Assembly (NCBI GenBank): GCA_002104945.1
Contig: MCFH01000015.1
Coordinates: 558,001-622,000, forward strand
Direction of reading: 5' to 3'
From: Piromyces finnis finn
Taxonomy: Eukaryota > Fungi > Neocallimastigomycota
Length of the DNA: 64,000 nt
A program made the translations under genes and the position numbers. The notes beneath the pieces are model-generated. The model did no database searches. It was not told where the DNA came from and worked only from the letters and a program-made list of their open reading frames with translations. Positions 293 to 19,707 of the stretch are shown piece after piece. The first letter of the stretch is position 1. Each line of letters opens with the position of its first letter.

Positions 293-1411
293 TTAACGAC
301 GGCAACCAGTCTTGGCAACTAATTCAGCTGGACATTCAACTTCTTCAAAGTCCATTTCTGGATTATCGGCATTCATGAACCAACCGAATCTCCATCTACA
401 ACCAGCTTGGAGAGAAGATGGTAAGTTGGAACAACCATCAACTGAACGAAGACCACCATAACGTTCACCCCAGGAGGCAGCGTTAGTGTTGAATTGAGAG
501 GAACAACCATCGAAAATACCAAGACCACCACCAGGCATTTGGAGATCGAAGTGGTTTTCACCAAGATCACCACCAGTGTTAGTAACTTGGACAATCATTT
601 GCTTACCGGCAATAGCAGTGTTGGTGAAGGTTAACTTGTAACAAGCACAACACCAGGAAGCTTCAGAACCACCAGAAATGGAAGCAGCAGCGAAACCATA
701 AGATAAATTGTCATTAACAGCCCATGGTTGTTGGTCAGTACACATGAAGGCTTCACCACCATCACAACCACTCTTAGCGTTAACATCACTAAGAACAGAA
801 CCATTTCTGCTACAAGTGTTAACTGGGTGGCTTACGCTAGCCTTACCAGACCAGGAGCAAGATGGCTTACAACAATCCCAGTAACGAGTAGTCTTACCAT
901 GTCTCTTACCAGAGCTTGGAGTGTAGTTACTGTTGTGGTTGTTGTTGTTATTGTTGTTGTTGTTGTTCCAGTTGTTGTTGTTGTTATTGTTGTTGTTGTT
1001 CCAGTTGTTGTTGTTGTTATTGTTGTTGTTGTTCCAATTGTTGTTATTGTTGTTGTTGTTGTTGTTACCACCACATTTGCTGGTATCAATTTCACAAGCG
1101 GAATTGTTTTCCCAACCCCATAAACTGTTATCACCACCAGTACCAGTGACAGTACAACCGCTACATAAACGAGCACCGTGTGGACCAGTTCTGTTAGAGT
1201 TGTTGTTGTTGTTGTTACTAGCATTGTTACCACCGCACATGTTTCTGTCGATTTCACAAGCAGTGTTGTTTTCCCAACCCCATAAACTGTTGTCACCACC
1301 AGTACCAGTGACAGTACAACCATTACAATATGGAGCACCGTGTGGACCGTAACCAGCGGCAGCAGCGGCACCAACCAAACCAGCAATAGTTAATAATAAT
1401 TTAGAATTCAT
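293..1411 (-). CDS. Secreted GH45 endoglucanase with two N-terminal CBM10/dockerin-like modules and an Asn(Trp)-rich linker
   Basis: 372-aa intronless ORF. Signal peptide; two [30 protein letters not shown] modules; poly-Asn linker; GH45 signature [12 protein letters not shown] and [10 protein letters not shown] with both catalytic Asp present. Confidence 0.95.
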
Positions 1412-3541
1412 TTTTTATTTTATTTATTTTTTTAATAATTTAGTAAAATATAATAACTATCAAAGTTATATTTACTTTCAAAGTAATAAAGATTAAAAAA
1501 ATTATGGAAAAAAGCTCTTCTTTAAATACCACGGAATGAAAGGATAAGTAGCAAATATATTAATATATAAATTACCAATATATTAATTCCGTTTTATTAT
1601 ATATTACCTAAAATCCATTAAGTTTCAAATAAAATATATAAAATTAATATAATTAAATTAAAGCTTACTTTTTCTTTTATAAAAAAATTAGTTTTAATAT
1701 AATAAAGTTTCAAATTTAACTTTATATAATATAATAATAATAAATTAAATTAAAAAATACATCTCAATTTAATTTCCATATTTTCCTTTTACTATTTTAC
1801 TCGAAGAATTATATATTTAATATATATTGGATTGAATACATCATCATTTAATATATTTTCCTTTTTGTTTTAACAAATACGATTTAATTTATTTTTGTGT
1901 AACTGTTGTTTTATTGCATGATAAAAATTTTTTAATTATAAATAAATATATTTTTTAGGATTTATATTTATACTATAAAATATAAAAAAAGCTTTTGTCC
2001 CTTTAAATACCATGTCATTTATGTTTCACAAATTTTAATTAAAAAAAGTGATTAGCAAATAAGATTTTATAATTTTATATAACAATGTTTAGATGCTCAC
2101 AAAACCAACGAATTATTAGGAATTTTAATATTTAAAAATTATTAATTTATATTAAACACTACTTTTAATTTTAAATAAAGTTTTAAAAAAAAATTTATAA
2201 AGGATACAAAACTTTATTTATTATAAGAAATAGTCTTTTAAAAAATGAAAATTTTCATTTTATGGTATGTTGTTTTATCTTATTATACAGACCGTTTCCT
2301 TTATATATGTTAATAAGAACATATTTTTTTTTGGCACAATGTCAAACACATGAAAAGTATTCATAAATAAAATAAAAAAAAAAGTCAATAGTAAACGAGG
2401 GATAGTTTCAATATATAAAATGATACAATAATTCCTTACTTGTACAAAGCATAATTTCATATTTCGGTAATTTAAAAGATATTAAAATGAAACTTTTTTT
2501 AAAAAAGTAGTGGGTTTTTTTTTTTTAATTAATTATTCATATTAATAATTTTTTTTAATTAAATCATAAATCTTATTAATAGATTTTAAAAAAAAATGAA
2601 ATTTTCTTTGCATTTTTTGTTATATATGGAAAAAGTATCTTTTTAAAAAAAAAATCATTATATAGTCATTCATTAATAAGTAATAGCAACTAATTTTGTG
2701 ATATATAAAAATGATAATGTTATATTTTAGTTAAAAATAAAAAAAAATTTAAATAAGAAATTATCAGAGAAATATTGGCAATTATCAAACTATAGTAGAA
2801 AGAAAGATGAGTAATCAAATTATGAGTTTCAAAAATGCATATTAATTAGTGTCATTTAAGCTTAGCAAAGTTTATTATTTATAATTTCAACATTTGTTAT
2901 ATGAATTTAATAAATCCATTTTCGGATACTTTTCTTTTTTTGTTAAGATCTTTTTTATAATTTTAATTATAAAAAAAAGCTAAAACACTTTTATATATTA
3001 TTTTATATATATTGCATTATTATTAAATTATATAGTTTAATTTATGTTTTAAATATAAACTTTAAATAAATTAAATTACTTTTTTAGGTAAATATTTATT
3101 AATTACTATTCACCAATAAAAAAACGGAATTTTTTATGAGAAATTAATTTATTTACAAAAAAGTTAATGTTTATTGAATAATCGTATATATTATGTCACA
3201 TTAATTTTAATGTATACATTTAATATTACATTACTCTCAAAGAAAAAAACAATTATAAATGAATAAATGATAATGATGATATTATCTTTTATAAAGCATA
3301 AATGATATAAATTAACATTTTTTATATTATTATTTAATATGTTTTTATTATTATACTTTTTAAAAAAGGGGAAGTATTAGGTCGGAGAATTAAAAGTTCC
3401 TATATATGGTTCCACTGTGGTTCTTATGATTCCTATGATTCCTGTGTGTAATATCTCTTTTTTTTATGATTACAAATTACATTTCAATAACAAAAAATTC
3501 AAATTCTTTTATTAATGATACATTTTACTTTTGTCTTTTCC

Positions 3542-17898: not shown

Positions 17899-19707
17899 TT
17901 AGTATTGATGTTTATAGTATTGCATATTATCGTTTTTCCAATAGCCATTATTATTGTTATTGTTATTATTATTATTATTGTTGTTGTTGTTATTGTTATT
18001 ATTCCAGTCGTTATTGCTTCCCCAATTTATTTGGCCTTGGTTGTTGTTGTTATTATTCCAATTATTAATAAAATTATTCCAATCAATATTATTATTGTTG
18101 TTGTTGTTGTTGTTATTCCAATTATTAATAAAATTATTCCAGTCAATATTATTATTGTTGTTGTTGTTGTTGTTGTTATTGTTATTGTTATTGTTATTGT
18201 TATTGTTATTGTTATTCCAGTTATTAATTAAATTATTCCAATCAATATTATTATTGTTGTTGTTATTATTATTATTCCAGTTATTAATTAAATTGTTCCA
18301 GTCAATATTATTGTTATTATTATTGTTATTATTATTGTTGTTATTGTTGATAAACCAGTTTATTTGTTCTTGAATTTGGTTTTGGTTTTGCATTTGGTTA
18401 GCCCAGTTAACCCAATTGTTTTGGTCTTGGTTTTGATTATTTTGGTTCCAGTTGTTTTGATTTTGATTTTGGTTTTGATTATTTTGGTTCCAGTTGTTTT
18501 GATTTTGATTTTGGTTTTGGTTATTTTGGTTCCAGTTATTTTGGTTCCAGTTGTTTTGGTTCCAGTTGTTTTGATTTTGGTTGTTTTGGTTTTGGTTATT
18601 TTGGTTCCAGTTGTTTTGGTTTTGGTTTTGGTTTTGGTTTTGGTTTTGGTTTTGGTTTTGGTTTTGGTTTTGGTTTTGGTTTTGGTTTTGGTTATTTTGG
18701 TTCCAGTTGTTTTGATTTTGGTTGTTTTGATTTTGGTTGTTTTGATTTTGGTTGTTTTGATTTTGGTTGTTTTGGTTTTGGTTATTTTGGTTCCAGTTGT
18801 TTTGATTTTGGTTTTGGTTTTGGTTTTGGTTTTGATTATTCCAGTTGTTTTGGTTTTGATTTTGGTTTTGGTTATTTTGGTTCCAGTTGTTTTGATTTTG
18901 GTTGTTTTGGTTATTTTGGTTTTGGTTGTTTTGGTTTTGATTTTGGTTTTGATTTTGGTTTTGGTTGTTATTTTCAACTGGTTTTGATACTTCAACTGGT
19001 TGTGGCATTTCAACTGGTTTTGGTACTTCAATAATTTTTGGTACTTCAACTGGTTGTGGCATTTCAACTGGTTCTGGTACTTCAATAATTTTTGGTACTT
19101 CAACTGGTTGTGGCATTTCGACTGGTTCTGGTACTTCAATAATTTCTTCTGGTACTTCTACAGATTTTGTTTTTCCAACAGGTTCATCGATTTTACCGAT
19201 TTCAATTGGACTATCGACTGTAATTTCACTAGCTATTTCATCCGATTTTTCTTTAATAATTTCATCTATTGTTGTTTTTTCTTCTTCATGAAGAGGAATG
19301 ACTTCTTCTTCAAAAGATTCAATACTATCTTCTTTTCCTTTTCCTTTTTTTCCCACCTTTTTTGATTTATTTAAATCACTAGTAGTATCAATTTTTTCAG
19401 AATCAATTTTGCTATCAATATCATCATTACCAATGATAGATTTACCAGCAATTTTACTTTCATTAAGAATATCTTCCATACTTTTTTGATTTTCAATACT
19501 TTCAAGAGTTGCAATATCAACTTGACTACAATAATCTGTATCAATTTCACATGAGGTATTATTTTCCCAACCCCATAAACTGGCATCATCACTAGTATAG
19601 GTAACATTACAACCATTACATATTGGTGCACCATGAGGTCCACCACCAAGAGAAAAGACAGTACCAACTAAAGCGGTACTATATAAAAATAAAATTTTAT
19701 AGTTCAT
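17899..19707 (-). CDS. Secreted non-catalytic protein: CBM10/dockerin-like module + acidic/PEVK-like repeats + Asn/Gln/Trp prion-like region
   Basis: 602-aa intronless ORF. Signal peptide, [38 protein letters not shown], Glu/Lys-rich segment, EVPEPVEMPQPVEVPKII repeats, NQNQNNW repeats, IDWNN(L/F)INNW x4. Confidence 0.85.
   Translation of the reverse strand: MNYKILFLYSTALVGTVFSLGGGPHGAPICNGCNVTYTSDDASLWGWENNTSCEIDTDYCSQVDIATLESIENQKSMEDILNESKIAGKSIIGNDDIDSKIDSEKIDTTSDLNKSKKVGKKGKGKEDSIESFEEEVIPLHEEEKTTIDEIIKEKSDEIASEITVDSPIEIGKIDEPVGKTKSVEVPEEIIEVPEPVEMPQPVEVPKIIEVPEPVEMPQPVEVPKIIEVPKPVEMPQPVEVSKPVENNNQNQNQNQNQNQNNQNQNNQNNQNQNNWNQNNQNQNQNQNNWNNQNQNQNQNQNQNNWNQNNQNQNNQNQNNQNQNNQNQNNQNQNNWNQNNQNQNQNQNQNQNQNQNQNQNQNQNQNNWNQNNQNQNNQNQNNWNQNNWNQNNWNQNNQNQNQNQNNWNQNNQNQNQNQNNWNQNNQNQDQNNWVNWANQMQNQNQIQEQINWFINNNNNNNNNNNNNNIDWNNLINNWNNNNNNNNNNIDWNNLINNWNNNNNNNNNNNNNNNNNNNNNNNIDWNNFINNWNNNNNNNNNNIDWNNFINNWNNNNNNQGQINWGSNNDWNNNNNNNNNNNNNNNNNNNGYWKNDNMQYYKHQY

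Follow-up and report, generated by a model that had tools for sequence, protein, structure and literature searches.

The window analysed here is a 64,000-nucleotide stretch of the genome of the anaerobic fungus Piromyces finnis, positions 558001-622000 of contig C57 (G000:C57) in the 56,455,805-base, 232-contig assembly that was also used for all genome searches below. It contains four neighbouring genes whose products begin in the same way and end very differently: three are enzymes of glycoside hydrolase family 45 (GH45 #1 to #3), and the fourth is a 602-residue protein that ends in a long run of Asn, Gln and Trp. The question raised by this locus is what brings the four proteins together. 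A sequence-only reading had proposed that the 602-residue protein polymerises and recruits the enzymes through Asn/Trp tracts. Our analysis favours, with a probability of roughly 0.7, a local cluster of paralogues in which all four proteins are addressed by a divergent module of the CBM10/dockerin family.

According to this explanation, three of the genes would encode active GH45 endoglucanases built in the classic order: the signal peptide comes first, then the targeting module in one or two copies, then a linker of low complexity and last the catalytic domain. The fourth would have retained the signal peptide and the module, with an acidic spacer and a disordered Asn/Gln/Trp tract standing instead of the enzyme. 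The module, and not the Asn/Trp tracts, would send all four proteins to one place, either cellulose or a scaffoldin receptor. Since a shared module of this family would by itself explain a common targeting, neither co-assembly through the Asn/Trp tracts nor a scaffoldin-independent principle of assembly is needed.

Four genes with one N-terminal module

The four open reading frames (ORFs) are intact when read from the sequence, at the positions where the sequence-only reading had placed them (Table 1). Each opens with a hydrophobic stretch resembling a signal peptide, followed by a module of about 40 residues. The module occurs six times in the cluster: GH45 #1 and GH45 #3 have two copies apiece, GH45 #2 and the 602-residue protein one. 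The copies are 71-86% identical and share 23 invariant columns. A profile built from them (A1) gave its best scores in the 56-Mb genome, 95-101 bits (E-values between 1e-27 and 1e-25), at precisely the positions of the six copies; the next-best site reached 67 bits, so that the sharing is far beyond chance.

Three of the proteins carry a GH45 domain, as had been claimed. They match Pfam PF02015 with E-values from 5e-81 to 2e-83 (2.3e-83 for GH45 #1) and 272-280 bits, the gathering cut-off being 27, and all three match solved GH45 structures with E-values of about 1e-86. Both catalytic Asp motifs, YWDCC and HFD, are kept in the three ORFs, as seen by direct reading and by alignment to the solved enzymes; their Asp residues presumably correspond to Asp10 and Asp121 in Humicola EGV numbering. 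Judged by these features, GH45 #1 to #3 are catalytically intact GH45 endoglucanases. The exact sequences of GH45 #1 and #3 are present in NCBI, and GH45 #1 groups at 90% or higher with a protein of Piromyces sp. E2, this orthologue having the same layout.

Duplication within the cluster is limited to coding sequence. The catalytic parts of the GH45 genes show 83-90% DNA identity, and the 5' end of the 602-residue gene, comprising signal peptide and module, is 71-79% identical at the nucleotide level to the GH45 5' ends. This result indicates that the fourth gene arose from a duplicated GH45 5' end. No domain was found in its product by Pfam at a credible score, GH45 included, and a tblastn search revealed no GH45 remnant in the ORF or downstream of it. 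For this reason, the possibility that the ORF is simply a frameshifted GH45 gene was ruled out.

A divergent branch of the CBM10/fungal dockerin family and its possible ligand

The module had been described as unusual. It is indeed not a canonical dockerin, and its copies in the window remain below the threshold of Pfam CBM_10 (PF02013), GH45 #3 reaching 18 bits against a cut-off of 23 and the others being unreported; nevertheless, it is a recognisable member of the CBM_10 family. Modules of the same subtype found elsewhere exceed the cut-off (26.6, 45.8, 56.9 and 70.0 bits for P0055, P0021, P0023 and P0024). Profile A1 gave no match in the Protein Data Bank (PDB), and a broader profile (A2), built from 23 copies of the subtype gathered from this genome, was needed. 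A2 matched the dockerin of Piromyces equi Cel45A (2J4M) over the whole module with an E-value of 0.0045, and the CBM10 of Cellvibrio Xyn10A (1E8R) over the WGWE..SC half only, with an E-value of 0.16. The double dockerin of P. equi Cel45A is also the best PDB sequence match of the N-terminus of the 602-residue protein. From 1.84 billion proteins A2 retrieved 254, with E-values down to 1e-17, and all ten of the ten non-fungal matches that were checked pass Pfam CBM_10. In an hhalign comparison with 16 canonical dockerins taken from this genome, the probability was 92% and the E-value 5.7e-7.

The AlphaFold2 model obtained from the 23-copy alignment, with a predicted local distance difference test score (pLDDT) of 91.3, contains two strands of at least three residues (24-28 and 31-34), preceded by shorter bridges, and a helix, in agreement with the small beta-sheet and short helix seen in 1E8P and 2J4M. 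The only credible PDB neighbours found by Foldseek are the two P. equi dockerins (template modelling scores of 0.63 and 0.58). These gave Z values of 4.2 and 3.5 over 39 residues in VIA-align, where only three of 48,161 chains reach Z >= 2. The Cellvibrio CBM10 structures 1E8R and 1QLD are absent both from the Foldseek matches and from these three chains. Since profiles, structure and family scans agree, the module is, to the extent that sequence and model can tell, a divergent member of the CBM10/fungal dockerin family with the dockerin fold.

Within this family the module stands apart. In the 16 canonical dockerins C1, Y8, C10 and W32 are invariant; in the variant, C1 is absent or variable, Y8 is replaced by Ala or variable, C10 is replaced by Tyr or variable and W32 gives way to Ser or Ala. 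W-G is followed by a second Trp, giving the motif W-G-W, and there are four Cys. W25 and W27 are near-invariant among the 23 copies, lie in a predicted beta-strand and align with the W-G-W of 1E8R. The residues that mark canonical dockerins (NCDD), namely the N-terminal Cys, the Tyr and Cys pair of GYPCC and the Trp of WCGI, are not kept in the window modules. In terms of profile scores, the window copies gave 62-71 bits with the variant profile and 0-12 bits with the canonical one, as compared to 3-11 and 40-69 bits for canonical dockerins of the same proteins, 22-35 and 3-21 bits for modules of Paraphysoderma sedebokerense, and up to 23 and 0-15 bits for bacterial CBM_10 repeats. By score, therefore, the variant is a distinct subfamily, nearer to non-cellulosomal CBM10 modules than to canonical dockerins.

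The two kinds of module also occur together in single chains of this genome, with the following orders: two dockerins, poly-Asn, variant and GH45; dockerin, CBM1-like module, variant and GH45; GH5, variant, linker and two dockerins; GH5, six variants and two dockerins; a further chain consists of GH5, two variants and CBM1. A CotH protein (P0134) has two modules of the variant subtype. Two adjoining multi-domain GH5 genes were observed at G000:C135:722209-730689 (P0020), one encoding GH5, two variants, GH5, two variants and two canonical dockerins, and the other GH5, six variants with acidic linkers between them and two canonical dockerins. A group of secreted proteins of about 300-490 residues (L019, at 1078-2031, on G000:C193; L018 on G000:C13; and the relatives P0021, P0022, P0026, L069 and L070) contains four or five variant modules with Ser/Thr/Asn linkers, and a hydrophobic C-terminus resembling a glycosylphosphatidylinositol or membrane anchor; these proteins may be cell-surface adhesins or anchors. 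In P. sedebokerense and a Logan contig (P0054, P0029, P0172, P0043), CBM_10 modules with W-G-(W/F/Y)-E-N are carried by an AA9 lytic polysaccharide monooxygenase (LPMO) and by an expansin-like DPBB protein, and may represent a fungal CBM10 lineage that preceded the cellulosome.

As for the ligand, the sequence comparisons incline us slightly towards a plant-wall glucan, at a little under even odds, with a scaffoldin receptor as the somewhat less probable candidate. In the first case, the module would be a carbohydrate-binding CBM10 inherited from pre-cellulosome fungi, the GH45s would be free enzymes targeted to cellulose and the 602-residue protein a non-catalytic protein that binds fibre; this is a sub-hypothesis on the ligand and is compatible with the explanation that we prefer. 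In the second, which we hold as a serious though tentative option, the module would be a functional dockerin of a second specificity class, and the four proteins would be components of the cellulosome, the 602-residue protein as a non-catalytic dockerin-domain protein.

The higher variant-profile scores of Paraphysoderma and bacterial CBM10 modules, compared to canonical dockerins, speak for carbohydrate, as do the oxidative and expansin-like proteins to which the Paraphysoderma modules are attached. These are the nearest relatives with a named source found outside Neocallimastigomycota, and P. sedebokerense is an aerobic blastoclad with no cellulosome to our knowledge, which goes against a second dockerin class. 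The W-G-W of the module is aligned with that of the Xyn10A CBM10, whose two Trp residues we take to be Trp22 and Trp24; these reportedly bind cellulose, as described by Ponyi and co-workers in 2000. Moreover, the module has substitutions at the invariant Tyr and Trp of canonical dockerins, and a review cites mutagenesis in which Trp and Tyr residues were implicated in binding to the cellulosome (PMC4601266). Against this reading, Trp27 would pair across the strands of the predicted hairpin with the small residue that replaces the canonical Trp, so that, if the model is right, the aromatic platform of the dockerin could survive by a swap.

The context of the variant again speaks for carbohydrate. 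It adjoins the catalytic domain, in up to six tandem copies, in chains that already contain complete canonical dockerin pairs, and it is repeated four to five times in the small surface-type proteins. However, CBM1 is present in some of the carriers, among them PfGH5 (PMC12120621), and cellulose binding is already supplied there. Fold and top sequence match are those of the P. equi dockerins and not of 1E8R, with 33-41% identity to dockerin 2 of Cel45A, and this favours a second dockerin class. The same holds for the literature: the authors of the PfGH5 paper named two copies of the subtype in this P. finnis enzyme a double dockerin, CBM10 (PMC12120621). GH45s with N-terminal dockerins are known cellulosome members in anaerobic fungi (PMC7015840), and one GH45 encoded in this genome resembles P. 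equi Cel45A in having three canonical dockerins. A second dockerin class is disfavoured by the loss of the canonical Tyr and Trp and by the presence of complete canonical pairs in the same chain; in addition, a cohesin partner of the fungal dockerins has yet to be identified (PMC10485095).

Asn/Trp tracts and the 602-residue protein

The sequence-only reading had also noted Trp-punctuated poly-Asn in two of the GH45 linkers, and we found it in GH45 #1 and #2; the Trp punctuation is preserved in the orthologue of GH45 #1 from Piromyces sp. E2, and the linker of GH45 #3 has no Trp. In the GH45 #1 gene AAC makes up 81% of the Asn codons. The 56-Mb genome has 32 sites with the coding pattern N5-W-N5, grouped in about 10 loci (0 in the reversed control). 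Among them are the linker of a GH11-CBM1 xylanase and a secreted repeat protein, and the sites that were inspected lie in secreted proteins. This repeat protein (L053, G000:C30:1-2710, with a duplicate at G000:C193:144004-144723) consists of seven units, each with G-S-K-T-L-P, a Thr run and Trp-punctuated poly-Asn, and of a Cys-rich C-terminal domain; it contains no dockerin-like module. A related motif, G-T-K-x-L-P, is shared by the GH45 #2 linker and that of the GH45 from Piromyces sp. E2.

A metagenome scan with a two-sequence alignment returned 13 transcript-shaped contigs from other samples, 11 of which encode GH45s with 1-3 variant modules, one of these being frameshifted. The linkers of these enzymes show four chemistries on the same architecture: N/W, N/Q/Tyr, Thr/Lys and poly-Ser. 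In L064 (27-659, P0025), a transcript-shaped contig encoding a two-module GH45, a frame shift in the Lys/Thr linker leaves the catalytic domain out of frame, which may reflect either a mistake in the assembly or a broken gene copy. Asn runs, together with N/S/T-rich linkers in carbohydrate-active enzymes (CAZymes), are a documented trait of the phylum (PMC6883316). Because four chemistries occur on one architecture, one linker of the cluster is devoid of Trp and Asn runs are phylum-wide, the linker is, judged from these comparisons, a fast-evolving spacer and not a conserved interaction code.

The 602-residue protein has the long spacer and the Asn/Gln/Trp region of over 300 residues that had been described. 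Its tail, of 346 residues, is 60% Asn, 21% Gln and 7% Trp, Asn and Gln together making up 81%. At the DNA level the tail is built of tandem repeats of 15, 21 and 60 nucleotides, the 60-nucleotide units being up to 97% identical, and the spacer repeats have a period of 54 nucleotides, 3.0 copies and 97% matches. The Trp residues are regularly spaced because short DNA units, each holding one TGG, were amplified. AlphaFold2, run on the single sequence, gave a mean pLDDT of 38.8; the tail is predicted to be disordered with no repeat fold, a result that is neither for nor against assembly.

These data bear directly on the model of the sequence-only reading, in which polymerisation or condensation of the tail would draw in GH45 #1 and #2 by way of the Asn/Trp linkers of these enzymes. 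In its full form, the W-G-W module would be a scaffoldin-independent fibre anchor that fixes the aromatic-punctuated N/Q chain of the 602-residue protein to plant cell walls, and this chain would self-associate into a gel, a condensate or an amyloid-like matrix, co-concentrating the GH45s with matching Asn/Trp linkers; if true, the cohesin-dockerin cellulosome would have an extracellular alternative driven by low complexity. The strongly prion-like composition with evenly spaced aromatics is in its favour, as are the rarity of N5-W-N5 tracts, the Trp punctuation retained in the GH45 #1 orthologue of Piromyces sp. E2 and the N/Q/S/Tyr-rich repeats that likewise end the only relative of the 602-residue protein (P0055, see below). 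The spacing, however, follows from tandem amplification, the tail has no predicted structure, the linkers vary among GH45s of the same architecture and within the cluster itself, Asn runs are a compositional trait of the whole phylum (PMC6883316), and co-localisation is already explained by the shared module. We therefore consider both the recruitment model and its fuller form very improbable, and the tracts, which are not conserved, a poor candidate for a glue.

The 602-residue gene is single-copy in the genome, and the spacer has no paralogues there. Homologues were difficult to find. A word search with the whole protein returned Rho factors and insect N/Q proteins, which are low-complexity look-alikes and were discarded as spurious, and so was a TPR protein matching residues 1-255, where only Pro/Glu/Val repeats were aligned. 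Residues 1-255 as a stand-alone query gave no homologue in the word search, and the ESM Atlas gave no usable match. The metagenome scan found nothing with the protein alone and no new relative of it with the two-sequence alignment. An exhaustive profile search yielded one relative, P0055, on a 1,419-nucleotide transcript-shaped contig of another anaerobic fungus. The two proteins share 55% identity in their first 73 residues, a region that extends beyond the module and takes in the segment S-x-V-D-I-A. In P0055 the module is followed by an acidic spacer and an N/Q/Tyr-rich stretch and, beyond a one-base change of frame, by at least nine repeats of about 20-26 residues rich in Gln, Asn, Ser and Tyr. 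At least one other fungus thus has the same layout, and this speaks against a pure pseudogene.

For this reason we regard as unlikely the explanation that the ORF is a decaying by-product of duplication, that is, a GH45 5' end whose linker was expanded by slippage after the loss of the catalytic part, and which is weakly expressed or silent. Such an origin would account for a 5' end that has diverged from those of the GH45 genes after copying, for the young repeats (97% identity in both the 60- and the 54-nucleotide units), for several frames left open by low complexity, and for the want of a matching protein in the collection searched and of homologues in the word searches and the Atlas. Codon usage can be read either way. 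In the tail 70% of the Asn codons are AAC, versus 11-26% in ordinary genes of the window, a bias resembling that of the GH45 linkers; elsewhere the gene has AT-rich codons, with a third-position GC content (GC3) of 0.09 in the spacer and AAG as 1 of 25 Lys codons, like ordinary genes of low expression. On the whole, codon use is ambiguous. Decay is made less likely by 780 nucleotides of non-repetitive coding sequence that are open and in frame with the tail, by the lack of a GH45 remnant downstream and by the common layout of P0055. A weak hint in the same direction is that four sequencing runs of the same organism, whose type was guessed, hold 49-65% of the sampled words of 15700-19800; if they are RNA, this exceeds what GH45 #3 alone could give, and part of the 602-residue gene would have to contribute. 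Most likely, then, the 602-residue protein is a non-catalytic accessory protein anchored by its module, which would be expressed and secreted and whose tail would serve as a flexible polar chain.

Some observations weigh against the explanation by a shared targeting module. The term targeting is assigned on the basis of family membership; the window copies score below the Pfam cut-off; single E-values are weak for a module of 40 residues, and the case rests on several independent lines that agree. Tracts of N/Q punctuated by aromatics recur in the relative of the 602-residue protein, and also in the linkers of several GH45s and a further secreted repeat protein, so that they may have some function. 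Finally, the exact sequence of the 602-residue protein was not found in a collection of 15 billion proteins, which says little, since that of the obviously real GH45 #2 was not found there either; the public gene models of these two genes may be missing or spliced through the Asn repeats.

The surroundings of the cluster are ordinary. Intergenic GC content in the window is 10-20%, and eukaryotic genes of common types lie to the right (Nop, DEAD-box helicase, importin-like HEAT, ThiF). A 187-residue ORF between GH45 #2 and #3 (13407-13970, minus strand) has no Pfam match at an E-value of 0.001, and a long microsatellite of the (TAT)n type at 3360-3930 gives rise to a spurious poly-Tyr ORF of 132 residues. 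Synteny was viewed on a single contig of Piromyces sp. E2, on which 1.5 kb separate the orthologue of GH45 #1 from the contig end.

Table 1. Genes of the cluster and their parts, in window coordinates
Feature	Position	Strand	Description and basis
GH45 #1	293..1411	-	372 residues; signal peptide, two modules, N/W linker, GH45 catalytic domain
GH45 #1 module 1	1229..1339	-	residues 25-61; 71.0 bits with variant profile, no match with canonical-dockerin profile
GH45 #1 module 2	1067..1177	-	residues 79-115; 67.1 bits with variant profile
GH45 #1 linker	899..1066	-	Trp-punctuated poly-Asn, AAC codons predominating; sequence and codon reading
GH45 #1 catalytic domain	299..898	-	residues 172-371; Pfam match
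GH45 #2	9813..10841	+	342 residues; signal peptide, one module, linker, GH45
GH45 #2 module	9885-9995	+	variant profile
GH45 #2 linker	9996-10232	+	N/W, then N/Y/S with GTK-x-LP motifs
GH45 #2 catalytic domain	10233-10829	+	Pfam
GH45 #3	15780..16811	+	343 residues; signal peptide, two modules, short Asn linker, GH45
GH45 #3 modules	15852-15962 and 16011-16121	+	variant profile
GH45 #3 catalytic domain	16203-16799	+	Pfam, solved structures
602-residue non-catalytic paralogue	17899..19707	-	ORF; no Pfam domain at credible score
602-residue protein, N-terminus			residues 1-25; signal peptide and GPHG lead-in to module
602-residue protein, module	19522..19632	-	residues 26-62; 62.3 bits with variant versus 12.4 with canonical profile
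602-residue protein, spacer	18943..19521	-	residues 63-255; acidic, Glu/Lys/Ile/Val/Pro, three PEVK-like repeats of 18 residues
602-residue protein, tail	17902..18942	-	residues 256-601; Asn/Gln/Trp, N-Q repeats with Trp, then four ID-W-NN-(L/F)-INN-W units

Relation to known systems

The module family is already known and Asn-rich linkers are routine in the phylum, and thus the cluster does not represent a new principle of cellulase assembly. Its meaning lies elsewhere. What is usually grouped under "fungal dockerin = CBM10" contains a subfamily that can be clearly set apart and that is found beside canonical dockerins in the same enzymes. If this subfamily binds carbohydrate, dockerin counts, lists of "cellulosomal" enzymes and designs of chimeric enzymes would need correcting, and the subfamily would mark the likely ancestor of fungal dockerins. 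With the partner of the latter still to be identified, a separable subfamily also offers a direct comparative binding experiment. The 602-residue gene, apparently missing from protein catalogues, is predicted to encode a rare kind of secreted protein, anchored by a module and otherwise wholly of low complexity.

The closest known architecture is that of P. equi Cel45A (2J4M/2J4N, 1E8P/1E8Q), in which a GH45 domain stands behind N-terminal Cys-rich modules of about 40 residues. The modules of the window share with its dockerins the elements C-x2-C, T-Y/G-T-x-x-D and W-G-x-E-N, and their model superposes on them. Unlike them, they are devoid of the N-terminal Cys, of one Cys of the CC pair, of the Tyr of GY-P and of the W of WCGI, and have W-G-W and a GPHG(A/S)P lead-in. 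A true Cel45A-like gene, whose product has three canonical dockerins, is located at another locus of this genome (L040). PfGH5 has two copies of the same subtype, C-x-G-C-V-V-T-G-T-G-G-D...WGWE (PMC12120621), and its catalytic domain and modules are also encoded in this genome; differently from the GH45s of the window, the modules come after the GH5 domain and are followed by a canonical dockerin and CBM1.

The CBM10 of Cellvibrio japonicus Xyn10A (1E8R/1QLD) has in common with the module the half W-G-W-E-(D/N)-x2-S-C-x-I...C, and bacterial CBM_10 proteins are retrieved by the module profile, their repeats outscoring canonical fungal dockerins on the variant profile; the N-terminal half of the Xyn10A CBM10, however, differs, and 1E8R is no structural neighbour of the model. 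Outside Neocallimastigomycota, the nearest relatives with a named source are the Paraphysoderma proteins KAI9141184.1 and KAI9136425.1, with C-x-G-x2-(V/I)-T...G-x-D-G-x2-W-G-(W/F/Y)-E-N-x2-S-C-x-I. Unlike the window modules, those of Paraphysoderma do not have the second and the last Cys, and are attached to oxidative or loosening proteins.

The 602-residue protein resembles in its tail composition the N/Q-rich prion-like domains, such as that of yeast Sup35, and the Asn-rich proteomes of Plasmodium and Dictyostelium; in AT-rich genomes Asn tracts are frequent without known assembly roles (PMC6883316). It differs from Sup35-type domains in being putatively extracellular, in its Trp content of 7% and in being built from young tandem repeats. 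It is also similar to the non-catalytic dockerin-domain proteins of anaerobic fungi (expansin-like, CotH), as a putatively secreted protein with a candidate targeting module and without a glycoside hydrolase; unlike these, it carries a spacer and a low-complexity tail in place of a folded passenger domain.

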